The notes beneath the pieces were generated by a model. It had not been told where the DNA came from and made no database searches. It worked only from the letters and a program-made list of their open reading frames with translations. The position numbers and the translations under genes were made by a program. Of a stretch of DNA of 64,000 bases, positions 30,559-47,086 are shown one piece after another. Within the stretch, counting starts at the first letter, position 1; every line of letters starts with the position of its first letter. The DNA is taken from sequence record OR413581.1; one strand, 5' to 3'.

Positions 30559-31432
30559 CATCATTCAGCAAGTTCAGGCAGTCGAAGAGTGGTTTCGCAA
30601 GACAGATATTTACCAACAGAAAGCGACTGAACGTCAGTTGGTGAAGTATTACGTCACACTCGGCAGGATCTCAGCAGGTGTCGATGAACTGGATAACTTA
30701 AAGGTGGCTGCCGGTATCGGTGAATCGATTTGGACATTTGCCGCGCTGCTACACCTCGGTCCACATTCTAACCTCGGTGATATTGTCGTTCCGTTGAGTG
30801 ATGCGGTGTCTCTTCGTACTACAACTGGCACGAAAGAAGGACAACTGCAGCAGCTCATGTTAATTGCAGTCGAGACCGTTAGTGTTGTTTTGCGTGAACC
30901 AGAACCTGACCCTAAGAGTTATAGCGCGCTGCTTCGTAAGTTGATGAGACAGTATCAATTGTTGGCGTGTCGTTGCGGGCTGGAGTTTGACCGTGTTGTT
31001 TTTAATGGCCATCGTAAGCTCGTTAAGACGCCTGAAACGACAAGCACGCTCGGCGAACTGCTCAAAGCATCGTTGCCGTTATCCGACGATGATTTGGCGA
31101 AACAAACCTATCAGACGGTGTACAAAACCAACGAGTCAGTTCACGACATTATTGTAAATTGCCTTTTGGCCACATCGAATGATTTACAAACCGAACATAA
31201 CGGTGAAGTCGCCATGCCGCAGCTATTGCTGCGGATGGAGGACATTATGAACGAAAAGCTGCAAGAGCTTCTCAAGGCGCACTTTGAACCGTGGATAGTA
31301 AGAAAACAAATGTTGTTCAATCGTAACCCTCGTGTTGATGTTAAGTTCGACGGTAACGCTGTAAACATTTGTGCGAACGACGATTTAAGAGACATTTTGA
31401 ATTTATTGAAAGGAGAAACCAAACCGGTTTAA
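30551..31432 (+). CDS. Degenerate MazG-like protein
   Basis: W...I......QLVKYYVTLGRISAGV......AAGIGE aligns to the MazG-like protein at 35712 but lacks the acidic metal ligands; GTG 30551 with SD GGAGG. Confidence 0.55.
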   Translation: MPSIIQQVQAVEEWFRKTDIYQQKATERQLVKYYVTLGRISAGVDELDNLKVAAGIGESIWTFAALLHLGPHSNLGDIVVPLSDAVSLRTTTGTKEGQLQQLMLIAVETVSVVLREPEPDPKSYSALLRKLMRQYQLLACRCGLEFDRVVFNGHRKLVKTPETTSTLGELLKASLPLSDDDLAKQTYQTVYKTNESVHDIIVNCLLATSNDLQTEHNGEVAMPQLLLRMEDIMNEKLQELLKAHFEPWIVRKQMLFNRNPRVDVKFDGNAVNICANDDLRDILNLLKGETKPV

Positions 31433-31437
31433 CGATT

Positions 31438-32355
31438 ATGAAACGTGACGATAGAACATATCGCTCCTACGATCACATGAAACAGCGATGTCTTAATCCC
31501 AATAACCACGCATATCCTAGATACGGTGGCAGGGGAATTAAAATATGCGAACGATGGCTTGAGTCTTATGCCAATTTCCACGAGGATATGGGCACCAGGC
31601 CACCGAACACGAGTTTGGAAAGAAAAGATTCTAATAAAGATTATTCCCCAGATAACTGCGTCTGGGGGAATGATTTAGTTCAGAATAACAACAAGGACTC
31701 AACGAACTGGGCCACTCTTTACTACGACAATCAAAAAGGGTACAGCGACGACGAACTAAAAGATTACGAACAGATTGACGACCTGTGTGAGATACTGGAC
31801 GGACTTAAAAAGAAATACCCGCACTCGTCTATATCGGGTGGAATTAAACTGCTCGACAATCGAAACGGTATAGCGACATTCGCTATACTGAAAAAACTAG
31901 GGAAAATCCATATCAAACCAGGAGAAACATTTCATAAGCTAACCCCAATTGAACCGGTTAGCTTAGACAGTAAGAATCAAGTTAGATGGAAATGGTTGTG
32001 CAGTTGTGGGGGATACACGATTGCCAGACAGCATGATGTGTTTAGCGGTAATACGAAGTCGTGCGGATGTCTTCATCTTGAAAGAATCACGAAACACGGC
32101 CTTACTCGCGACGGAAAGAAGAAAACAAGAATTTATAAAGTCTGGGAATATACGCGTGCAAAATGTGAAAACCCTAACACGTCAACCTACAGTGGTTTTG
32201 GTGGGAAGGGTGTAACTGTCTGCGATCGGTGGAAAAAGCTAGAGCATTTTGTCGAAGACATGGGTATTCCCGAAGCCAAAAAATACACACTTGTGTTGAA
32301 AGACGGCGCAAAAGTATTTAACAAAGAAAACTGTTTCTGGAGAATAAAACAATGA
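31438..32355 (+). mobile_element. Free-standing HNH-type homing endonuclease gene with duplicated domain
   Basis: MKQRCLNP..YGGRGIKICERW..F..DMG.RP..SLERKD..DYSPDNCVW..Q.NNK; second copy KCENP..FGGKGVTVCDRW..F.EDMG..NCFW; CxC..SCGC motif; visibly A-rich codons; ATGA overlap with thyA. Confidence 0.82.
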
Positions 32356-33389
32356 AGCAATACCTTGAGATGATGCAGAATATTCTGGATGAAGGCCACG
32401 TTAAAGGTGACCGTACTGGAACAGGGACGCTTTCGGTCTTTGGTCGTCAGATGCGCTTTAATCTGCAGGAAGGCTTCCCATTAGTCACTACGAAAAAATG
32501 TCACATCCGTTCTATTATTCACGAACTGTTGTGGTTCCTTAGTGGTGACACCAATATCAAATATTTAAATGATAACGGGGTAACGATCTGGGATGAATGG
32601 GCTGACGAAAATGGTGCGCTTGGTGAACTCTATGGTGCACAATGGAGACGTTGGAAAGATGTGAAACTGGTGCCTAAGAAAAATGCAGCTTTACTCGAGA
32701 AACTGCAAGATGCAGGATACGTGGATTATGGCGACGCGGACGACGGTTCACAAATGTTCGATGCGCGTGTACTTCTGAAACTACACGACCAAATCTCTAA
32801 GGTGATTGACCAACTGCGTAACGATCCTGACAGTCGCCGTATTATTGTCAGCGCATGGAATGTGGGTGAGTTGGATCAAATGGCGTTAGCGCCGTGTCAT
32901 GCGTTCTTTCAGTTCTACACTCGTGAGCTGTCTATCGACGAGCGTCTTGATTGGTTTGAAAAGAACCTTCCAGATCAATTTAACGATTCCCGCTTTAGTA
33001 ATGAAGCTGTAGCAGATGACGCAGTGTTCCACGTTGAGATGGACGCACTTGAAATACCTCGCCGCATTCTTTCATGTCAGCTGTATGCACGTTCCCAAGA
33101 CTTCTTCCTGGGAACACCGTTCAACATCGCGTCTTACGCATTACTCGTACACATGGTAGCTCAGCAAGTTAACATGGTTCCAGGCGATTTCGTTTGGAGT
33201 GGTGGTGACGTACATCTGTACTCCAACCATCTGGAGCAGGCCAAGCTGCAGCTGACGCGTGAGCCGTTACCTTTACCGAAACTGATCATCAAGCGTAAAC
33301 CGGAATCTATCTTCGATTATAAATTCGAAGATTTTGAGATCGTTGGGTATCAGTCTCATGAAAAAATATCTGCGCCTGTCGCTATCTAA
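32352..33389 (+). CDS. thyA: Thymidylate synthase
   Basis: [41 protein letters not shown]; uninterrupted frame. Confidence 0.98.
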
Positions 33390-34966: not shown

Positions 34967-35446
34967 ATGTCTATAACTCGGATCGATTATCGTGCCGTAG
35001 TAAAAGAACTGTCCAAAGGTCTTATTGAACTGGACTCCGATGAAGCCCGCAGCTGTGGCTTCCTGCCACACATTGCACTGAGTGAGTTCCGTACCATCCG
35101 TTACGGTGCCGGTCGTCAGAAGGGCGTTACAACACACGCCGTTGATATGTCAGCAAAGTTCCACGGCAGCGTTCTGTATCTGGTCCACAATGAATCGTTA
35201 CGAAACGAAGTAGTGGAGAAATTCCATGAAAAGGCTGCCGGGAACGGTTGGTTGACCGTGCACTGTAACTACTTGCCTGAGGGTTGGAAACACGCGACGG
35301 GTGCTGGTATATCCGGCTACGAGAAATTCGGCTTGGTTATTGTCGACGAAGCGGGTTTCTTCTTCAACAAGTTCAGTTACGATAAAATCTATCGCAGTCT
35401 GGTTGACGTAGTAACGCCAGACGTTGTGATACACCTGATTAATTAA
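34967..35446 (+). CDS. Stand-alone terminase/helicase-like P-loop domain
   Basis: GAGRQKGVTT Walker A-like and LVIVDEA Walker B. Confidence 0.55.
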   Translation: MSITRIDYRAVVKELSKGLIELDSDEARSCGFLPHIALSEFRTIRYGAGRQKGVTTHAVDMSAKFHGSVLYLVHNESLRNEVVEKFHEKAAGNGWLTVHCNYLPEGWKHATGAGISGYEKFGLVIVDEAGFFFNKFSYDKIYRSLVDVVTPDVVIHLIN

Positions 35447-35458
35447 GTAGAGGAAAAT

Positions 35459-35647
35459 ATGGCTGGAGAACTCGGTCGTGGGCAAGCCACAACGTTCATG
35501 TATCGTGATGGGTTAGGTGCGGATGTAAACATGTCTCCGGATGACGAGATGGTTATCCCTGGACTTGACCCGGACGCAGGTGTGGAAGGTGGCGTTGACC
35601 CGTCGAAAGACGACGACAACTGCACCGGTGGTGCGTGCAAGATTTAA
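35459..35647 (+). CDS. 62-aa protein resembling the NrdA C-terminal redox tail
   Basis: SD GAGGA; ends DDDNCTGGACKI, compare E. coli NrdA DDGCESGACKI. Confidence 0.75.
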   Translation: MAGELGRGQATTFMYRDGLGADVNMSPDDEMVIPGLDPDAGVEGGVDPSKDDDNCTGGACKI

Positions 35648-35656
35648 AATACGTAT

Positions 35657-35693
35657 TAGGGTGTCCATATGGACACCCTACTTATTTTTTTTT
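35657..35693 (+). terminator. Intrinsic terminator (perfect 24-bp palindrome)
   Basis: TAGGGTGTCC-ATAT-GGACACCCTA then CTTATTTTTTTTT. Confidence 0.88.
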
Positions 35694-35711
35694 GTTTAAG
35701 GAGCTATCAAA

Positions 35712-36668
35712 ATGGGCGAACGTTTCATTATCCAGATTCCGTATAACGTTATTGTTGAACCTAACCAGTACCTGGCACAGATTAATGAACTTCTGGCTGG
35801 ATTCTGCCAACGTCAGTTTGTTAAACCGTGGTCCTTTGAGAAACTGTACACCCTGTGCGTGAACAGTGAAACCGGTCACACTTACGTCGAAGGTAAAGTC
35901 TTCACAGGCGACCAGCGTTTGGAAATAAATGATTTCGAAATGCCTTGGACGTTGGAAGGTGTCGAGTATCGTGGTACGGTTGATCGCCCGCGTTACGTAC
36001 CTTTGTACACCATCCCACAATGTATTACTAACGTTATGGGTTGGTCTAAAGCGCGTGGTATTCTGGATAACGGCGTCTGGTATAGCCAAGCCACCAAACT
36101 CTACGAAGAAGACGGTGAAGCAGCAACCGGCATCAGCAAAACCAAAGAACGTCTTATCATGGACGGCCTAGGCGATGCAATGGTGGTACTGGTTAACGTC
36201 AACGCCTTGGTAGGTATGCCATCCAAGTTGGTTTCTGTCATGCTGTCCCGTGGGCGCGCACGTCTCGAAAAGAACGTTCCATTTGGCGATGCCCATCGCT
36301 TGTTCCACAAAATGCGATTGGCCTTCACGTTGATGCACGACATTGTCTATCAAGGGGCCGATCGTCGTAACCAGCACCAGGGCACTTATCGTTTTACCGA
36401 GAGTGACGACGATCTGATTATCGAATACGAAGAGCAGATGACCGTGGCACTCTATTACATGGAAGCACTGGCGCGAGCGTACAACATTACCCTGGAACAG
36501 TGCTTCTCACTGGCTTGGGATGAAATCAAAGACCGTAAGGGTTTCCTGAATGCGGACGGTATCTTCGTTAAAGAAGCAGACATGACCGCTGCTGAAATCG
36601 AAGTAAACGGTTCCCTTACTGTAAAAGATGAGGCGTTTACCGATGGCGAAGAAACTGTTCACGGTTGA
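35712..36668 (+). CDS. mazG: MazG-like nucleotide pyrophosphohydrolase with N-terminal extra domain
   Basis: QATKLYEEDGEA...DGLGDAMV...LEQCFSLAWDEIKDRKG..DGIFVKEAD. Confidence 0.85.
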   Translation: MGERFIIQIPYNVIVEPNQYLAQINELLAGFCQRQFVKPWSFEKLYTLCVNSETGHTYVEGKVFTGDQRLEINDFEMPWTLEGVEYRGTVDRPRYVPLYTIPQCITNVMGWSKARGILDNGVWYSQATKLYEEDGEAATGISKTKERLIMDGLGDAMVVLVNVNALVGMPSKLVSVMLSRGRARLEKNVPFGDAHRLFHKMRLAFTLMHDIVYQGADRRNQHQGTYRFTESDDDLIIEYEEQMTVALYYMEALARAYNITLEQCFSLAWDEIKDRKGFLNADGIFVKEADMTAAEIEVNGSLTVKDEAFTDGEETVHG

Positions 36669-37065
36669 TTACGACGAATACGTTGATCGTTTACTGGTCA
36701 ACAATATCGTCTGGGAAGACCACGGTCTAATGCCGTGGCATCTGAAACTCCTAGCGGAGCGTTCAGAACAATACGGTGGTTTGGAGTTCGTACTTACCGA
36801 CACACCTATTCCGGTACCTCACATTGCGCCGGTAGAAAATCTGTACTTCTTCGATGCTAATGTGAAGTTATTACAGCAGGTACTCTATACGCATGACTGG
36901 CGTGGTGGTTGTCAGTTCCCAGAGAACGTTCTAAAGCTCTCTGAGCGCTTCGGCACCGACATTGCATACTGTCAAACGTTCCCAAAAGACTTGGGACGAA
37001 ACAGCGTGGTACTGTGGTATTACCCTCCGGTAAAAGACATCGTGAAAGTGATTATCGAACGCTAA
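36643..37065 (+). CDS. Hypothetical protein
   Basis: SD GAGG supports ATG 36643. Confidence 0.7.
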   Translation: MAKKLFTVDYDEYVDRLLVNNIVWEDHGLMPWHLKLLAERSEQYGGLEFVLTDTPIPVPHIAPVENLYFFDANVKLLQQVLYTHDWRGGCQFPENVLKLSERFGTDIAYCQTFPKDLGRNSVVLWYYPPVKDIVKVIIER

Positions 37066-37118
37066 AAATAAAAGCAAACGAGTACCCCGTTAGGGGTACT
37101 CGCGTTACTTATTTTTTT
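37065..37118. terminator. Bidirectional terminator
   Basis: CGAGTACCCC-GTTA-GGGGTACTCG with AAAAATAAAA before and TTATTTTTTT after. Confidence 0.9.
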
Positions 37119-37119
37119 G

Positions 37120-37671
37120 TTACGCTTGAGTCATGTCGGAGATGTCATAAACCAGACCGTTCAACTCAGTAACGGTGATCAGTTTACTGATATCGACACC
37201 ATCGCTCGGAACTTCGGTCAAATAAACTTCAACCGTACCCGTCCACGCCAGTGACTTTCCATTGAAACGCAAATTGTGTTTCGTGGAAGACGTCATTGAC
37301 TCCGTCGCATAAATCTCGCTCGCATCAATCAACCAATTGTACTTGGCCTGTAACAACGGAACGAGGTCGGCGGCTGTATTGGCGCTACTACCGTCCACAG
37401 ACAGCACCACGTTTTCAAACAGGTGGGCTACGTCCAGTCGACGGTAAGTAAGACCCATCTTACCAAACGTACCTTTCTCAACGATACCAGAAACATCGAG
37501 ACTGGTGTTCAGTCTGGTGTACTGTTCTGGGTCAGGATCGGCTGCGGTGATGTGCGACGGGTTACCGAACGACAATTTATCGATGGTCACGCCCTTACCA
37601 GTCAGTCCGGGATTCTGGGACACGATAAGATCGTAAACCAACTCTTTTGCGGTCTTTCCAAATAAACTCAT
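37120..37671 (-). CDS. Virion tail-tip/baseplate-associated protein
   Basis: LNTSLDV..G....LTYRRLDVAHLF motif typical of phiKZ-like tail-tip/fibre domains. Confidence 0.6.
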   Translation of the reverse strand: MSLFGKTAKELVYDLIVSQNPGLTGKGVTIDKLSFGNPSHITAADPDPEQYTRLNTSLDVSGIVEKGTFGKMGLTYRRLDVAHLFENVVLSVDGSSANTAADLVPLLQAKYNWLIDASEIYATESMTSSTKHNLRFNGKSLAWTGTVEVYLTEVPSDGVDISKLITVTELNGLVYDISDMTQA

Positions 37672-39964: not shown

Positions 39965-42900
39965 TTAGCTTGCTTTCCGACTTACGTTTAACGACGGTGT
40001 CGGTTGGGTTATTTCCTGCCTACGTGCAGCTGAGCCCGGAGGAGGCACATTTGCCGCTTGCTGGATACTACCACCCCGTATGTCGTTTGCCGCTCTTGGA
40101 TTTGATTTCAAAATATCACGAATCTCTTTCAAGTAATCGCGAGACTGAATCAGTACCTTGAGCTGCTGAACATCTATCGGGTCACCATTCAGCGTTGGCG
40201 TCGATGCTGTAGCATCAGAAGTTGGAGCGGCAACTGGACGAGCTGCTGCGTTAACCTGCGCTTCCGCGCCTGCTTTCACTTTAGCAACATCCGTCGCAGA
40301 CAATCCTTCTGCTGCAGCTTGCGACGCTACGGTTTCGGCCGTTGTTGAGGCATCGGATGTTCCGGTACCGCCTGTGGTTGGTGTAGGCGCTGCTGGTCCT
40401 ACATTACCTGCGGCGGTAGCCATTGCATCTTGTGCCGCCATGGCCCCTTTCTGCGTCAATGCGTCATCACGACGATTAGCATTATCTGCTGGCAGGTTAT
40501 CTGCTGGCGACAGACTCGGGTCATTAGCGGCCGGTGCACCCATTGCTGCTGCCGGGTTGGTTGGTGAATTAGGCGACAAGCCTGCAACCATATCCTTCGT
40601 CTTGCTCGGATCGGCAGCGACTTCGTTGGCGGAAATTGCGCCCATGCGGCGGTTCAGTTCCTGAATAACCCCGTCTACGCTACGTATACGACCGTTGCTG
40701 TAGAAGACGTTGGCATTCCCTCTCAGTATTGCGGATGTAATCCCAGGAGCACTCGATGCCGCCATATTCGGATTACGCTTCCATGCTTCCAGGAATTTCT
40801 TACCGCCGCCTGCACCCAGGAAGTGGTACAGATAAGCCACGGCTGGAGGTGGTGCTTTACCGCCCAGGTCACGTTGTGCTTGTTGGATGTTGTCACGAAT
40901 GAACTGTACACCCAATATAGCATTCGCCCACGGGTCCATTTGGTTAACACGCGGAATACCAAACTTCCGCGAATACCCCTTCATCATCCCGTCCCACGTG
41001 CCGTTAACAAACTGGAACAACCCAGATGCCGAAGCATACGGGTTTTTAGCGGTGTAGTTAAATCCGGACTCCGCCTTAGCCATTGCTAACGCCACTGCAG
41101 GTGGCACGCCCATCATGTTCGCTGCATCGGTAATCAATGCTTTGATATTCGGAACGTTCAACGCACCCTTTCTACCCAACATTTCTATCGGGTATTTTTC
41201 AGCCAGTGACTTATAATCACCGTCTTTCACATCACTCAGGTTAATCGAAGACGAACCAGTGGTCATTGCAGCGTAGTTCCGCACACCGCCAACCGCATCG
41301 ACGACTTGACCTAAGTTACCCGGCACACCGCCACTCGTGCCCGATGGAATGTAGCCTGAGGCGCGAGCACCGTCAGATGACAAAGAATCTCCCGAACTGA
41401 TGTTCGAGTCTTCTTCATCTTCACCGGTGACTTCCAGAGAACTGCGGTTCTTGTTACGATCCTTCCAGCGTGCACGCTTGCCATTGTTTTTAATGGCTTT
41501 AATCATGTTACGCACGGCAAGGTCAGCTTCTTTTGACAACAGCTTCAGCGTTTCCAGCTCGGCTTTGATAGACGATGGGTTCGTGTTAGCATCGCCCCCT
41601 AATGGGTTGATATTCACTTCCCACACCGACTGTCTTATACCACCTTTCAAGCTGTAGGCAGTTGACATCATCAGACTGATTTCGTACAGGTAGCCGCCGG
41701 TCAGTTTCAAGTTCAGCGGATCGGCTGTTGGCAGGTAACGCTTCACCCCAACCAAATACGTCATGAATACCGGTAAGAAACGGTCAAAGAACCACCGTTT
41801 CAAACGATCTTCTTTCGGTGTACCGATGGCGTCTGGAACCATCGAGGCGATTGCTTTCTTCCAGTCACCTTTATAGCTTGCGGTTTTCACGTCGATGTCT
41901 TTGATGACGTTCTTCTCGAATACCGTAATCAACGTGCGTGTGGCGTTGTCGATGGTGGTAAAACCATAAGTCTTCCAACGTACCGACTCCATCGCATTCA
42001 TGTCTTTCTGGTCGAGCACCGCATTCCAGTCTACCTGAATCTGAACCTGCTCTGTTCCGTCTTCCCAACCCTCTACCTTCGCCAGATTTTTGTTACGTTC
42101 GTTATCCAACTGTCCAAGTTTGTTGATAGCTTCATCAACGCCCGCGGACTTAATCCCCTCCACGGCCGGTGCCATTCCGTACTTACGTGCTTTCTTATCG
42201 TCCATTCTGAATTTGATTGCACGCTCGACTTCATTCTGCACTTCCATAACCTCTTCACCGCTCAAAAACTCCTTCGGTGTAAAGGTTACAACGTCCCAGG
42301 CTTTCGAGAAGAAGCCTTGGTTGACTTTGCGTGGGTCTGTTAACGAAGAGAACGCTTTTGCATCCTTAGTCATCTTCATTTTGTTGAAGAGTGTCTGCAT
42401 GTCCTCTTTCGATACTTTCTTAGCATCGCCGACGTCAGCCAACTGGATACTGTTCGGCATCGATTTCAGTGCCGTAATCCAGCGGAGATAAATCGGAATG
42501 AAGCGCTGAAGCATAAACGCTTGGAAGGCCAACATCTCGCCTTTTTCCTCAACGTTAATACCGAACCCTTCAGCTAACTTCTGAACGTCTTTTCCACCTA
42601 GCCCACGGAGACTGGCTTGGCCATCTTCCGCGTAAGACACATACTCACGCAATGCGTCTTCTAAGTAACGCGCCTTCGCCCCGTCGTCCGACGACCACTT
42701 ATCGTAATCACGGAAACCGTACTGAGCTAAACGCATCTTATCCAGGTACTGGGTATAGGTAGTCGTTGCGATCTTGTACGCGGCGTAACCTGCCGCAGCG
42801 ATCGCACCACCGATAAGAATTGCCGGCCAGCCCACTGCTGTCACGACGGCAGATGCCGCAGTTGCCACAGCGGACACCGCGGGTGCTGCTAAACGGGTTA

Positions 42901-45900
42901 CTGCGAACTTACCAACATTCCACGCAGCCTTACCTAAAAGACCTACTGGTTTTAACACGCCCCATTTCGTGATAGAACCGAGTATATTACCCACAGTTCC
43001 CAAGATACTGACGATGGGACCGATAATAGGTAAGCCCTTCACCATATCCCACAGACCGCCAGATTTCCCTTTGGAGCCCTGCGCTTTCTCTTTCTTCTCC
43101 TTACGTTTCTCACGCCAACGTTTGAAGAAGTTAAAGTAATCGCGTTTTTCATCACCTTCAGGCGGCTTGTTACGTTTACCGAACTTCGCAAACATGGTAC
43201 GAATAATGCCATCGTCACCACCTGCACGGGATACTGATTCACGCATGGTGTTAAACCACGACATCTCTTGCAAGCCAATCATTCGGTCCAAGCGTTCGAA
43301 TAACCTTGCGCCTGCAGACTTGGCGGCATTCTTCCCTTTGTTAATAACCCTCCCTGCTGCATCACGGGCGGTCTCAAGGTCTTCCTTCGCATCGCCGTAG
43401 ACTTTACGGCCAGAAAGGCCACCTTTCGCGTTCAGATGACTGCGATAAAACTCAGCAACATCATCATCGCGTCCAGCCAACCGACGTTCAACTTCGTAAC
43501 GTGTAGCAATGTCGTGCCGTGCTCCACGATACCCATCGAGCATATCCCCAGCCCGGCCTCGGAAACCACTGAACCAACCACGCAGACGGTCACGTCCACG
43601 ACCAAAGAACGCTTTTGTTCTTGACCAACGTCCACCAAAACGTTCAGACAACGACGATTTCGCACGATTATACGCCCCGCGAACTGCACGGCCGATCGTA
43701 CTACCACCGCCACCGACACCCTTCTCCATTTCTTCTGTCCAACTTTCGTCTTCCGGTTCGCCCGGTAAACGTTGGTTCAACAGTTTATAGATACGGATAA
43801 GGATGTGGTTGGTTTTCTTGCCGGTTGATGAGAAGATACTGAAACCACCACCCCCACCATCTTTACGGCCTTTCCACCAACGCGTCAGTGGGTTGTCGGT
43901 AATCATGTCTTTCAGACGGTCGACACCACGTTTCGCAAAACCGAGCACTTTACCCGGTAAGCTCGTTACGCGGTTGAACGCTTTCTGGAGACGTGTCTTT
44001 TCTTCGCCTTCCGGAATCTCGTTCAGCCAGTCCTTAATCTTACCAACGATGCTGCCCGCTTTCGGTGACAGGAAATCCAGGAACCGTTTCGGTAGCTTAG
44101 CCACCTTATTAAAGCCTAAGCCAATCTTACTGGCCAGACCTTGGGTCAGTGCTTGGATTTTCCCGCCTTTATAGTAGCGGAGTTTACCCGCAGCGGCTAA
44201 GTCAGCGGCTGCTAATACCAGATTACCTGCGGAGTCAACAATATCACTCCCCAGTTTGATGTCGTCCAGCGTTTTCAGCTGAACCATTTTACCATCAATG
44301 ACCTGATAGTATTCTCCAGCTTCCAGACGTGCACCTTGCAGAACAACATTACCGTGGTCATCGTAAACGTCGCGGATACCCAGCAATCCTTTACCGAAAG
44401 AGCTTACTGCTTCAAAGCCCCCACGGACACTACCGCTGATAAGGCCACGCATCCGGGTTAAGAAACCAGGACCTTCTCCGCCACCCATCCCTGCGATTTT
44501 ACCGCGTGCCCAGCCACCGAACTGATTCAGTTTATTCCAGGCACCCTTAACACCACGTTTCGCAAAGCCGCCGATTCCTGTTGCGGTGTCGAACAACACG
44601 CCACCCCAACGACGAATAAGCCCATCCTCACCGATGATAATACGACGGCGTTTACCGCCACCGCTACCACCGCCAGGACGAGGTGGACCCATTTCTTCGT
44701 CACCAGAACCAGCACCTCCTGCTAACGAAGCCAGGAGAACCCCTTCTTCGTCCATACTTCTGACGTGCTCCAGAATTTTCTGGAGGGTGTCACTGTTGTT
44801 GTTACCCCGAATCGCTTCGATGATGCCGTCAAAGTTATTCCGTGGTGCTTCTTCGCCACGGTTACGTTGGCTCAGCAATTCAACAAAGTTAGTCGAGGTT
44901 TCACCGTAGAGAACTGCGGCTAACTGCCGAGGCGACATTCCGCGGCCTTTACCACCGCCACGTAAAGCCGGCGGCAACGACGTGTCATCGGCACCACCAC
45001 TTGCCCCTTGGTTCATTCGGCGCAGATAGTCGCCTAACGCCGAACCGTTTTGCAGCTTACGTTGAATCTCCTGCTCACGAGTCAATGCACGACCGCTGCG
45101 TGTCTTACCCATTGCCAAGTCATTAAACAAGGTATAGGGATCGGACAGGTCTTTATCCGCGCCGAAAGTGTCACTCTTCGCGTCGTAGTTAAAGATACCC
45201 GCATCGCGCAATGCTCGCTCACCGTAAATATTCACCGCCTCGTCGATAATTGCCTGACGTTGGGTGATAGATGACTGCACTGTGGAGATTTTGCGGGCCA
45301 GCTCGTTACTTAATTCGTTGCTACCACCGACCAAGCTATCAGAATGCCCCTGTAACGCTTCCTTAATGCGTTCTGCGGCGTTTCCTGGCATATACCGATG
45401 AAGATGCATCGGGTCTTTCAGAATCGCTTCTACGTCGAATGCACGACCCTGCGAGGCACGTGACTCGATATAGTCGGCAAGATGCTGCCGATCCTTCTGC
45501 GAGAGCGTTTTGCCACGGTCAACAAAATCTACAGTGCTGTTAATGGAATTTTGGAGACGCAGCCGTTGCTCATCGTTTGCAACCGCTTTGCGTACGCGGT
45601 TACCGAGCACTTTGCGGTCTACGAAACCACGGCTGGTGATGTCGTATTCCAGGTCGGCATGTTCGCCATAACCCCGACGAACAGATTTGTTAATCTCTGC
45701 CAGCCAGGCGGGAATAACTTCAACCAGGCTAAGATATGCTTTACGGTCAAATTTCGCCGAACGGCTTAACGTTTCGCCATTACGTTCGTCAAGGAAGGCT
45801 TTCTCACGGTTTAACGGTTGGACAATACCGAGTTCATTCAGTACCCGGAACAAATCCGCCAATGGTCCTTGCGTTTCGCCTGCGATGGCTGAGTTCGAGA

Positions 45901-47086
45901 TGGAGGAAAGATTACCAAAGGTGAACGCGCCCTTCTGCAGGCGTTTCATGACCTCTGGATTTTTCTCCATCTCCTCGCGAGTCCATTTCTGGAGTTTCTC
46001 GATTTGTGGACCGAGTAGTTTCTTCGCAAGGAATCCGCTACCCCACGCAGTTGCTTTATCGCGAGCATTTGTTTTGCGACGTTCGGCAGTCAACGAAGAG
46101 CTGTCGCTCATGCCGAAATCATCTTCAACACCCATGCCGAGAACAGATTCTAACAAACCACGACCTTCGCCAAATATACCTGAAATTTTCTTCTTGGTAT
46201 TTTCGCGAATCATGTCCATAAACCCGTCGGCATAACGCAACGGGTTCATCCATTCTGCAGCCTGACGTTTAACGTTCGCCCAACGGACTTCTGAGAAATC
46301 TTCCTTCGCGTAATCCGGCAATGCCGTGTTCTTCACGATGGCTTCTAAAGCAGGCGTATTACGATCGAACTCCGACTGCTTCATCTTCACGATGTCTTGG
46401 ATGGCAAACAGGGTACGGTATTGCAGTTCGAGTTTCTTACGCTCGATGTTTAAGAATACCCCGCGGCTTAACCCGGTTAGCAGGTTAATGTCTTTCGCCA
46501 TCCCAATCATGGTTTGGTGCATTGCATCCGCACGCATCTCTTTGATGCTGTCGCGGAGCTTATCCTCTACCATGCTGTCCTGCAGCTGACGTTGTTCTTC
46601 GGCGTCCTTTGGCACACCTGAGAAAACGTCGCCCAGTTCACGATCCATCAACGCCTGATTAGGATCGTAATTTTGGTAATCCAACTGGTCAGATTTTGAC
46701 CACTTGTCGAAGCGCTTAGTAACTGCATCCGGCAAGTATTTCTTCATCGTCGGACCGAGTTGGCGTGCTTGCATCTTCAGCGTGCGCTCGGTCTTCTCAA
46801 GCTCCCCTTTCGTATGGGCGTAAATGTCCTTTGCTGCAGCTGCCGCTGACTGATAACCCTCGTATGCGTCAGCTGCCGGCTTAGGCATCCCCTTGAGGAT
46901 AACTTGGTCACGTTTCCCTTCTGGCCAGATAGTTGACAACGCCGACTTCCTGGCAACATTCAGGGTACTGAGTATCGGGCTTCGTTTTTTCTCGTCTTTG
47001 GGACGGGGTGGTTCACCGAAATCATCCCAGTCGTCGAGTCTATCTAAATCGATATCATCGAAACCGTCTTTGCCTCTTTTTGCCAT
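39965..47086 (-). CDS. Giant tail protein: tape measure with lytic transglycosylase domain (phiKZ gp181-like)
   Basis: 2373 aa; long helical, Gly/Lys/Arg-rich region; C-terminal AMAKAESGFN..ASGLFQF..TW..DPWANAILG..YLYHFLG SLT domain. Confidence 0.9.
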   Translation of the reverse strand: MAKRGKDGFDDIDLDRLDDWDDFGEPPRPKDEKKRSPILSTLNVARKSALSTIWPEGKRDQVILKGMPKPAADAYEGYQSAAAAAKDIYAHTKGELEKTERTLKMQARQLGPTMKKYLPDAVTKRFDKWSKSDQLDYQNYDPNQALMDRELGDVFSGVPKDAEEQRQLQDSMVEDKLRDSIKEMRADAMHQTMIGMAKDINLLTGLSRGVFLNIERKKLELQYRTLFAIQDIVKMKQSEFDRNTPALEAIVKNTALPDYAKEDFSEVRWANVKRQAAEWMNPLRYADGFMDMIRENTKKKISGIFGEGRGLLESVLGMGVEDDFGMSDSSSLTAERRKTNARDKATAWGSGFLAKKLLGPQIEKLQKWTREEMEKNPEVMKRLQKGAFTFGNLSSISNSAIAGETQGPLADLFRVLNELGIVQPLNREKAFLDERNGETLSRSAKFDRKAYLSLVEVIPAWLAEINKSVRRGYGEHADLEYDITSRGFVDRKVLGNRVRKAVANDEQRLRLQNSINSTVDFVDRGKTLSQKDRQHLADYIESRASQGRAFDVEAILKDPMHLHRYMPGNAAERIKEALQGHSDSLVGGSNELSNELARKISTVQSSITQRQAIIDEAVNIYGERALRDAGIFNYDAKSDTFGADKDLSDPYTLFNDLAMGKTRSGRALTREQEIQRKLQNGSALGDYLRRMNQGASGGADDTSLPPALRGGGKGRGMSPRQLAAVLYGETSTNFVELLSQRNRGEEAPRNNFDGIIEAIRGNNNSDTLQKILEHVRSMDEEGVLLASLAGGAGSGDEEMGPPRPGGGSGGGKRRRIIIGEDGLIRRWGGVLFDTATGIGGFAKRGVKGAWNKLNQFGGWARGKIAGMGGGEGPGFLTRMRGLISGSVRGGFEAVSSFGKGLLGIRDVYDDHGNVVLQGARLEAGEYYQVIDGKMVQLKTLDDIKLGSDIVDSAGNLVLAAADLAAAGKLRYYKGGKIQALTQGLASKIGLGFNKVAKLPKRFLDFLSPKAGSIVGKIKDWLNEIPEGEEKTRLQKAFNRVTSLPGKVLGFAKRGVDRLKDMITDNPLTRWWKGRKDGGGGGFSIFSSTGKKTNHILIRIYKLLNQRLPGEPEDESWTEEMEKGVGGGGSTIGRAVRGAYNRAKSSLSERFGGRWSRTKAFFGRGRDRLRGWFSGFRGRAGDMLDGYRGARHDIATRYEVERRLAGRDDDVAEFYRSHLNAKGGLSGRKVYGDAKEDLETARDAAGRVINKGKNAAKSAGARLFERLDRMIGLQEMSWFNTMRESVSRAGGDDGIIRTMFAKFGKRNKPPEGDEKRDYFNFFKRWREKRKEKKEKAQGSKGKSGGLWDMVKGLPIIGPIVSILGTVGNILGSITKWGVLKPVGLLGKAAWNVGKFAVTRLAAPAVSAVATAASAVVTAVGWPAILIGGAIAAAGYAAYKIATTTYTQYLDKMRLAQYGFRDYDKWSSDDGAKARYLEDALREYVSYAEDGQASLRGLGGKDVQKLAEGFGINVEEKGEMLAFQAFMLQRFIPIYLRWITALKSMPNSIQLADVGDAKKVSKEDMQTLFNKMKMTKDAKAFSSLTDPRKVNQGFFSKAWDVVTFTPKEFLSGEEVMEVQNEVERAIKFRMDDKKARKYGMAPAVEGIKSAGVDEAINKLGQLDNERNKNLAKVEGWEDGTEQVQIQVDWNAVLDQKDMNAMESVRWKTYGFTTIDNATRTLITVFEKNVIKDIDVKTASYKGDWKKAIASMVPDAIGTPKEDRLKRWFFDRFLPVFMTYLVGVKRYLPTADPLNLKLTGGYLYEISLMMSTAYSLKGGIRQSVWEVNINPLGGDANTNPSSIKAELETLKLLSKEADLAVRNMIKAIKNNGKRARWKDRNKNRSSLEVTGEDEEDSNISSGDSLSSDGARASGYIPSGTSGGVPGNLGQVVDAVGGVRNYAAMTTGSSSINLSDVKDGDYKSLAEKYPIEMLGRKGALNVPNIKALITDAANMMGVPPAVALAMAKAESGFNYTAKNPYASASGLFQFVNGTWDGMMKGYSRKFGIPRVNQMDPWANAILGVQFIRDNIQQAQRDLGGKAPPPAVAYLYHFLGAGGGKKFLEAWKRNPNMAASSAPGITSAILRGNANVFYSNGRIRSVDGVIQELNRRMGAISANEVAADPSKTKDMVAGLSPNSPTNPAAAMGAPAANDPSLSPADNLPADNANRRDDALTQKGAMAAQDAMATAAGNVGPAAPTPTTGGTGTSDASTTAETVASQAAAEGLSATDVAKVKAGAEAQVNAAARPVAAPTSDATASTPTLNGDPIDVQQLKVLIQSRDYLKEIRDILKSNPRAANDIRGGSIQQAANVPPPGSAARRQEITQPTPSLNVSRKAS

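Follow-up and report, generated by a model that had tools for sequence, protein, structure and literature searches.

The window analysed here is a 64,000-nucleotide stretch of the genome of Salmonella phage SPLA3 (OR413581.1, genus Seoulvirus, 240.6 kb), with position 1 corresponding to position 176,594 of the record. SPLA3 is an SPN3US-type jumbo phage in which split multisubunit RNA polymerase genes are present. At 35459-35647 lies a small open reading frame (ORF) which is the orthologue of SPN3US_0234 (gp234) and of SPLA3 WNT48039.1, and which is labelled 'hypothetical protein' in every record. The encoded 62-aa peptide contains 13 acidic residues, 4 basic residues, and exactly 2 Cys. The gene, its parts, and its neighbours are arranged as follows.

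32352-33389, + strand: thymidylate synthase gene (thyA; PF00303, E = 2.7e-113).
34967-35446, + strand: gene for a 159-aa protein (phrog_2586); its model shows one RecA-like P-loop domain.
35450-35454, + strand: Shine-Dalgarno-like GAGGA, 4 nt 5' of the ATG, by direct sequence reading.
35459-35647, + strand: peptide ORF, ATG start, 62 codons plus stop; the product ends DDDNCTGGACKI.
35459-35554, + strand: residues 1-32, the N-terminal part, variable in sequence and length and predicted to be disordered (alignments, AlphaFold2).
35555-35599, + strand: residues 33-47, a second conserved motif with no counterpart in any Nrd protein.
35600-35644, + strand: residues 48-62, the NrdA-tail-like module, consisting of an acidic run, two Cys four residues apart, and the C-terminal end.
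35621-35623, + strand: Cys55, first cysteine of the tail module.
35636-35638, + strand: Cys60, second cysteine of the tail module.
35657-35694, + strand: intrinsic terminator; hairpin at 35657-35680 with a 10-bp stem, 6 G-C pairs, and a 4-nt loop, then a T-run.
35712-36668, + strand: gene for a MazG-like nucleotide pyrophosphohydrolase (phrog_7855, E = 2.9e-127), which starts the next transcription unit.

A sequence-only reading of this DNA had described an acidic 62-aa ORF with its own Shine-Dalgarno sequence and its own terminator, within a nucleotide-metabolism block containing thyA and MazG. The ORF and the GAGGA element can both be read from the sequence, and thyA and the MazG-like gene do flank the block containing the peptide gene. 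The hairpin with its T-run is also real, but the terminator is apparently not private to this gene, as no promoter-like site of its own was found and it looks like the last gene of the thyA-side transcription unit. The peptide ORF starts in the frame in which the 159-aa gene stops (35444-35461), with one TAA and four codons between them. Stop-codon readthrough from the upstream gene was considered and rejected, since in Erwinia phage Caitlin the two frames differ and in Cronobacter phage CR5 another gene lies upstream. The shared frame is taken as a coincidence.

The neighbouring genes have features of their own. Phage ThyA has 345 aa against the 266 positions of the Pfam model and matches it in two stretches, which implies that ~80 residues are inserted midway along the enzyme. 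Caitlin and CR5 keep this insertion, with an alignment that covers all 345 residues at 62–64% identity. A 328-aa ORF at 31369-32355 (+ strand) ends where thyA starts and is annotated as a 'restriction endonuclease' in SPLA3. It has no significant Pfam match, its translation contains two similar Cys/His-rich segments, and it may be a homing-type nuclease beside thyA. The model of the 159-aa protein is a RecA-like/ASCE P-loop domain (pLDDT 70, TM 0.4–0.5), a generic result that is uninformative for the peptide; the protein also weakly matches the ATPase cores of helicases, terminases, and RecD and has an invariant Walker-B-like Asp-Glu. In the MazG-like protein (318 aa) the PHROG MazG matches begin only from about residue 100, the N-terminal ~100 residues form an uncharacterised extension, and no Pfam match was found at E ≤ 0.1. 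Further downstream, a perfect bidirectional terminator-like hairpin (37077-37103, 10–11 bp stem) lies between convergent genes at 36628-37065 (+ strand) and 37120-37671 (− strand). The 2373-aa protein at 39965-47086 (− strand), annotated as a 'tail fiber protein', has long low-complexity Gly/Ala-rich stretches and a C-terminal segment that is transglycosylase-like by eye only.

The end of the peptide closely resembles the C-terminal tail of the class Ia ribonucleotide reductase (RNR) protein NrdA. An ungapped BLASTP alignment with E. coli K-12 NrdA (from NC_000913.3) pairs peptide residues 48-62 with NrdA residues 747-761 at 10/15 identities (pairwise E = 5e-05). Both stretches reach the last residue of their protein, both redox Cys are in register, and the five terminal residues are identical. 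The near-identity to the NrdA terminus and its Cys pair seen by the sequence-only reading is hence well founded, but the second resemblance it proposed, an upstream TTFMYRDG echoing NrdA, is a chance match. Its best alignment has 3/8 identities, a level also reached by 987/1000 shuffles.

For the tail, the likeness is beyond chance on the evidence of an empirical null, a profile ranking against the PDB, and position-by-position agreement. The C-terminal 15-mers of 21,337 stop-delimited frames (at least 20 aa) from three carrier genomes were compared with the NrdA terminus, and the orthologues of the peptide scored 10, 10, and 9 identities. The best non-orthologue among these frames had 6 terminal identities, which a single frame achieved, with all others at 5 or fewer. 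When a profile of 27 family members was compared with all 177,635 distinct PDB sequences, the top 14 matches were C-termini of class Ia RNR alpha. The PDB matches aligned end to end at the C-terminus, with E = 0.017 for E. coli R1, and 1qfn_B, a free 25-residue R1 peptide, was among them. The likeness is detectable in a PDB search only with family profiles. In single-sequence phmmer queries, the 62-aa peptide alone gave only a chance ankyrin match and its last 20 residues gave none.

Comparison with 120 enterobacterial NrdA tails shows which positions are shared. Counting from the C-terminus, host tails are invariant at -8 Cys, -5 Gly, -4 Ala, -3 Cys, -2 Lys, and -1 Ile. Among the 27 intact members of the phage family, -8 Cys, -5 Gly, -3 Cys, and -2 Lys are each present in 27/27, -4 Ala is found in at least 90%, and -1 is Ile or Leu. 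Position -6 is restricted to the same two residues in both groups, being Ser in 106/120 and Gly in 14/120 of the host tails and Gly in 22 and Ser in 5 of the phage peptides. An acidic run precedes the first Cys, with Asp/Glu at -10 in 26/27 and at -11 in 25/27 members. The mimicry is not perfect, as position -7 is Glu in 117/120 host tails and free in the phage family. The redox Cys pair on a flexible acidic tail, a mark of class Ia RNR alpha, is therefore present in a 62-aa peptide which has no Pfam or NCBIfam match and lacks the PF02867, PF00317, and PF03477 domains, all three of which are carried by true NrdA. The peptide is very probably a mimic of the NrdA tail that acts in the RNR/redoxin pathway.

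The peptide belongs to a small and narrowly distributed family. It matches phrog_38753 (E = 3.8e-46), phrog_14561 (E = 6.2e-16), and phrog_24014 (E = 6.6e-14), the latter two through its C-terminal half, and none of the three PHROGs has an assigned function. It is 100% identical in 19 phage records, and a translated search (tblastn) found homologues in 72 of 50,697 phage records, all small and all in jumbo phages. These carriers infect Salmonella, Escherichia, Proteus, Cronobacter, and Erwinia, all of them Enterobacterales, and belong to the genera Seoulvirus, Machinavirus, Derbicusvirus, and Alexandravirus. The same search of 50,697 records found no full-length phage NrdA matching the peptide. 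An exhaustive profile search of 1.84 billion representative proteins returned only 28 matches (39–157 aa), in nearly all of which the module forms the extreme end of the protein. None of the 28 is a full-length RNR, and no RNR among the 1.84 billion proteins carries the extended 30-residue module. Family members are 39–120 aa long and never fused to an RNR body, and three members whose sequence continues beyond the motif or departs from it partway resemble frameshifted or error-containing gene calls. Separately, the records of SPFM1, 5-10, 12, 14, and 15 (LR5359xx) match the window in 27–30 short pieces and contain fragmented or frameshifted calls of the peptide ORF and its neighbour (e.g. P0002, P0005, P0007, P0008, P0019, P0050, P0052). 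These assemblies look like error-rich sequences rather than biological variants.

Conservation within the family is concentrated in its C-terminal part. Both Cys are retained in 27/27 intact members, and the second motif at residues 33-47 has an invariant G45 and D47 in at least 90% of members. The N-terminal part varies freely in sequence and length, and residues 1-47 show no similarity to NrdA, NrdB, NrdD, or NrdG. No secondary structure is present in the AlphaFold2 model built from the family alignment (pTM 0.17), and the proteins are predicted to be intrinsically disordered. Between SPLA3 and CR5, the last 30 codons differ by 18 synonymous and 2 non-synonymous changes, and the last 10 codons by 6 and 0, respectively. 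This excess of synonymous change indicates that the ORF is translated and constrained, with conservation acting at the protein level. At the DNA level, nothing similar to the ORF was found by blastn in 5,426 E. coli genomes, and recent capture of host DNA is accordingly not supported.

All DNA precursors are made by way of RNR, which most large phages encode themselves. In the complete genome of SPLA3, no gene is annotated as an RNR, thioredoxin, or glutaredoxin. Four genomes were checked in full, those of SPLA3, the Erwinia phages Caitlin and pEa_SNUABM_1, and CR5, and tblastn with E. coli NrdA, NrdB, NrdD, and NrdG found no RNR gene in any of them. The search covers classes I and III, with class II absence based on annotation and weak cross-detection only. 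The thyA control was detected in all four genomes, and a single weak NrdD match in CR5 is located inside a virion gene. The sequence-only reading had considered the ORF a stand-alone gene rather than a frameshifted or split nrdA, and this is upheld by the absence of an NrdA body upstream, in the window, in the whole SPLA3 genome, and in the four carrier genera. Its suggested correlation with missing phage nrdAB also holds in the four carrier genomes tested (class I, III). The finding that it had named as refuting, a phage nrdA elsewhere in the genome, was looked for by tblastn with negative results in the four genera. A split, intron-interrupted, or trans-spliced phage nrdA was thus rejected, as there is no body in the four genomes and no nrd gene within 10 kb of the peptide in 21 uncultivated viral contigs.

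These RNR-less carriers keep thyA, DHFR, and dTMP kinase. RNR beta belongs to the small set of genes that more than half of jumbo phages conserve (PMC13282480), which makes the possession of thyA and DHFR without RNR an unusual state. The related phage phiKZ carries its own RNR (PMC12571901), and a translated search found no homologue of the peptide in it. Loss of RNR in the lineage is consequently plausible, and the peptide gene could be read as a non-functional relic of the 3' end of a lost phage nrdA, for which its location in a nucleotide-metabolism block would also speak. Purifying selection across genera and a tail motif kept in 27/27 members weigh against a relic, as do the gene's own start and ribosome binding site, the lack of DNA similarity to host nrdA, and the restriction of the extended 30-residue module to proteins other than RNR among the 1.84 billion searched. 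With chance resemblance ruled out by the empirical null, an explanation by relic or accident is extremely unlikely. A search of IMG/VR with the tail pattern alone matched 224 stretches, only 21 of them related to the peptide. The remaining ~200 probably represent C-termini of phage-encoded NrdA genes, in which case the host-type tail would be common to many phage RNRs.

SPLA3 also carries two adjacent radical-SAM genes of 441 and 303 aa (PF04055 plus a 4Fe-4S domain) at record positions 150925-153160 (L006:3925-6157), outside the window, and the pair is conserved in Caitlin and CR5 beside small uncharacterised genes. A class III RNR hidden behind these genes was rejected; they are not NrdG-like. 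As the peptide is small and contains Cys, and two radical-SAM genes occur in SPLA3, Caitlin, and CR5, it might instead be a RiPP precursor matured by these enzymes. The genes nevertheless lie ~60 kb from the peptide, and the 441-aa enzyme is missing from pEa_SNUABM_1, which keeps the peptide, so neither the adjacency nor the co-distribution of a maturase is seen. The invariant C-terminus and variable N-terminus moreover match the pattern of the host enzyme tail, leaving the RiPP explanation scarcely credible.

The genes around the peptide vary in kind and order, but deoxynucleotide synthesis runs through them as a constant theme. Seoulvirus and Machinavirus have thyA first, then a few small genes, the 159-aa protein, the peptide, the terminator, and the MazG-like gene. 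CR5 has the same block genes in a different order, and in pEa_SNUABM_1 only thyA remains, ~3 kb from the peptide, making thyA the only neighbour common to all four cultured carrier genera. Among the 21 uncultivated viral contigs, thyA lies within ~3.3 kb of the peptide in 16 and MazG downstream of it in 14; in four, thyA does not lie within 10 kb. Divergent contigs without these neighbours show further genes of this kind. In L047 a dUTPase gene ends 24 nt before the start of the peptide gene, and in L049 a dNMP-kinase-like gene comes after the peptide gene and a dCMP-deaminase-like gene lies ~2 kb upstream. The 159-aa phrog_2586 protein is found in the block of three genera, not always adjoining the peptide. 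It was rejected as a constant partner, since alignment places the genes upstream of the peptide in CR5 and pEa_SNUABM_1 in different families; the true homologue in CR5 lies downstream of the peptide.

This context bears on whether the peptide could be a redox adaptor or scaffold, in which the tail brings host glutaredoxin or thioredoxin, or the entire peptide brings host RNR, to phage nucleotide enzymes in a complex for dNTP synthesis, with ThyA, the MazG-like protein, and the P-loop protein as candidates. The second conserved motif would then bind a phage partner, and it is this motif, at residues 33-47, that RNR mimicry does not explain. At least two conserved short motifs with variable linkers are typical of disordered adaptors, and the constant linkage to thyA and other dNTP genes is compatible with such a role. 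Against it, thyA is the only constant phage neighbour and is not within 10 kb in four contigs, and none of the neighbours is to our knowledge in need of a dithiol reductant. An adaptor is on balance quite improbable.

The proposed role of the peptide draws on the redox chemistry of the enzyme that it resembles. In class Ia RNR each turnover oxidises a Cys pair in the active site, which is re-reduced by the Cys pair of the flexible C-terminal tail, and the tail is in turn reduced by thioredoxin or glutaredoxin (PMC4078304). A second reductant working in parallel to the tethered tail gives up to ~3-fold higher RNR activity in vitro (PMC4078304). A free NrdA tail peptide binds E. coli Grx1 as a mixed disulfide (PDB 1QFN), in a complex stabilised by removal of the second Cys (PMC10897161). 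A one-way trap for redoxins needs one Cys, and the retention of both in 27/27 members argues for redox cycling.

The gene product would then be a small, acidic, disordered protein, the last ~15 residues of which copy the redox tail of host NrdA (Cys754/Cys759). During infection it would be reduced by host glutaredoxin 1 or thioredoxin 1 in the manner of the native tail, and would cycle between dithiol and disulfide forms by engaging the active-site disulfide of host NrdA in trans. The throughput of host RNR would be sustained or raised for a phage with 240 kb of DNA to replicate and no RNR gene. Taken whole, our best reading, that a diffusible extra tail is cycled by host redoxins, acts on host NrdA, and supports dNTP supply, is put forward tentatively, as falling just short of an even call. 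That the effect on host RNR is stimulatory may be the case, leaning slightly to the doubtful side. Its most specific form, in which spare diffusible copies of the redox 'swinging arm' of NrdA are recharged by host glutaredoxin or thioredoxin, relieve a bottleneck in re-reduction, and raise dNTP output, is rather doubtful. Among the three functions suggested by the sequence-only reading, a booster of RNR turnover, a redoxin sink or adaptor, and a decoy, the evidence does no more than tilt towards a redox-cycling role in dNTP supply. A free peptide has a far lower effective concentration than a tethered tail, so stimulation is not guaranteed, and the motif at residues 33-47 without an RNR counterpart and the unhostlike position -7 also count against the redox-tail reading. 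In addition, where a small disordered protein or a free C-terminal domain is known to act on R1, its effect is inhibition or toxicity (PMC4245953, PMC3618301).

The main rival is inhibition by competition, with the free tail occupying the NrdA active site or the redoxins as a decoy, and thereby throttling RNR or diverting redoxins. Such an inhibitor fits the same evidence of tail mimicry and the binding of a free tail peptide to Grx1 (PMC10897161). There are precedents in yeast Sml1, which binds and inhibits R1, and in the disordered proteins Hug1, Spd1, and Dif1, which regulate RNR (PMC4245953). In Neurospora, the C-terminal domain of UN-24 on its own is toxic and binds Rnr1 in a complex that cannot be reduced (PMC3618301). 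However, the carriers lack RNR and keep thyA, DHFR, and dTMP kinase, enzymes that depend on deoxynucleotides being supplied, and shutting down the only RNR looks self-defeating. Neither a blocker nor a one-way trap needs two invariant Cys, and the gene is placed among biosynthetic dNTP genes. Inhibition is disfavoured since these phages depend on the host enzyme, and is considered unlikely. A decoy of another kind would protect the redoxins or the tail of host NrdA against a host defence system or competing element aimed at this step. The mimicry itself is compatible with shielding, but the context is biosynthetic and not that of an anti-defence island, literature searches found no defence system acting on the RNR tail, and we know of none. 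Shielding is very unlikely.

Comparison with known systems clarifies what a redox-cycling tail mimic would share with each. With the class Ia NrdA tail of E. coli and Salmonella the peptide shares the Cys-Cys spacing, the acidic run before the first Cys, and the same invariant positions. It differs from NrdA in that it is only 62 aa long, lacks a catalytic body and any Pfam domain, and comes from a genome without an RNR gene; it also has a free position -7 and, upstream of the tail, an additional conserved motif. The Grx1-bound peptide of 1QFN, which is recovered by the family profile, is likewise a free NrdA tail engaging a host redoxin (PMC10897161), but it is a laboratory construct with one Cys removed, whereas the phage peptide is a natural gene product that keeps both. 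Sml1, Hug1, Dif1, and Spd1 are also small and disordered, and act directly on RNR subunits (PMC4245953). They are, in contrast, eukaryotic, inhibitory, unrelated in sequence, and without a copy of the redox tail; no Pfam match to a Sml or Hug domain was found in the peptide, and general disorder is the only shared property. In UN-24 a free C-terminal piece of the large subunit acts in trans on the full-length large subunit (PMC3618301), but this domain is fungal, has 135 aa, is naturally part of a full-length RNR allele, and is toxic via a non-reducible complex.

Two further groups are comparable as they are described in the papers that cite them. Phage T4 thioredoxin, NrdH, and the Grx-NrdB fusion of Facklamia ignava also rewire electron delivery to RNR (cited in PMC10897161, PMC4078304). 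These are thioredoxin-fold redoxins with a CxxC motif, whereas the phage peptide is a substrate-side tail: its Cys are four residues apart, its model lacks secondary structure (pTM 0.17), and it has no Pfam match. C-terminal peptides of the RNR small subunit are also free tail copies acting on the large subunit (cited in PMC4078304). As described there, they are laboratory peptides of the beta tail which block subunit association, and are inhibitory and without redox chemistry.

Full-text literature searches turned up no account of an RNR tail peptide encoded by a phage, and no mention of gp234 was found in the SPN3US papers searched. The finding touches two known kinds of protein, those that mimic host short linear motifs and the small disordered proteins that act on RNR. 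Short-linear-motif mimicry is well known in eukaryotic viruses, and the peptide, if it acts as proposed, would show that bacterial viruses also use it to imitate a host enzyme. We know of no precedent for a virus that supplies spare copies of a host enzyme's own redox arm in order to boost it, and if correct this would be the first virus found to encode an isolated enzyme tail in order to boost, and not replace or block, the host enzyme. The peptide would then also provide a natural probe of a poorly visualised step of RNR, the docking and re-reduction of the tail, and three PHROG families that had no assigned function gain a function-linked name. A lineage without RNR conserves a minimal peptide that copies the electron-entry part of the host enzyme, and these phages probably plug into the host DNA-precursor supply in a previously undescribed way. 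Should the peptide act on host RNR or its redoxins, this would be a new and very economical form of viral steering of host nucleotide metabolism.
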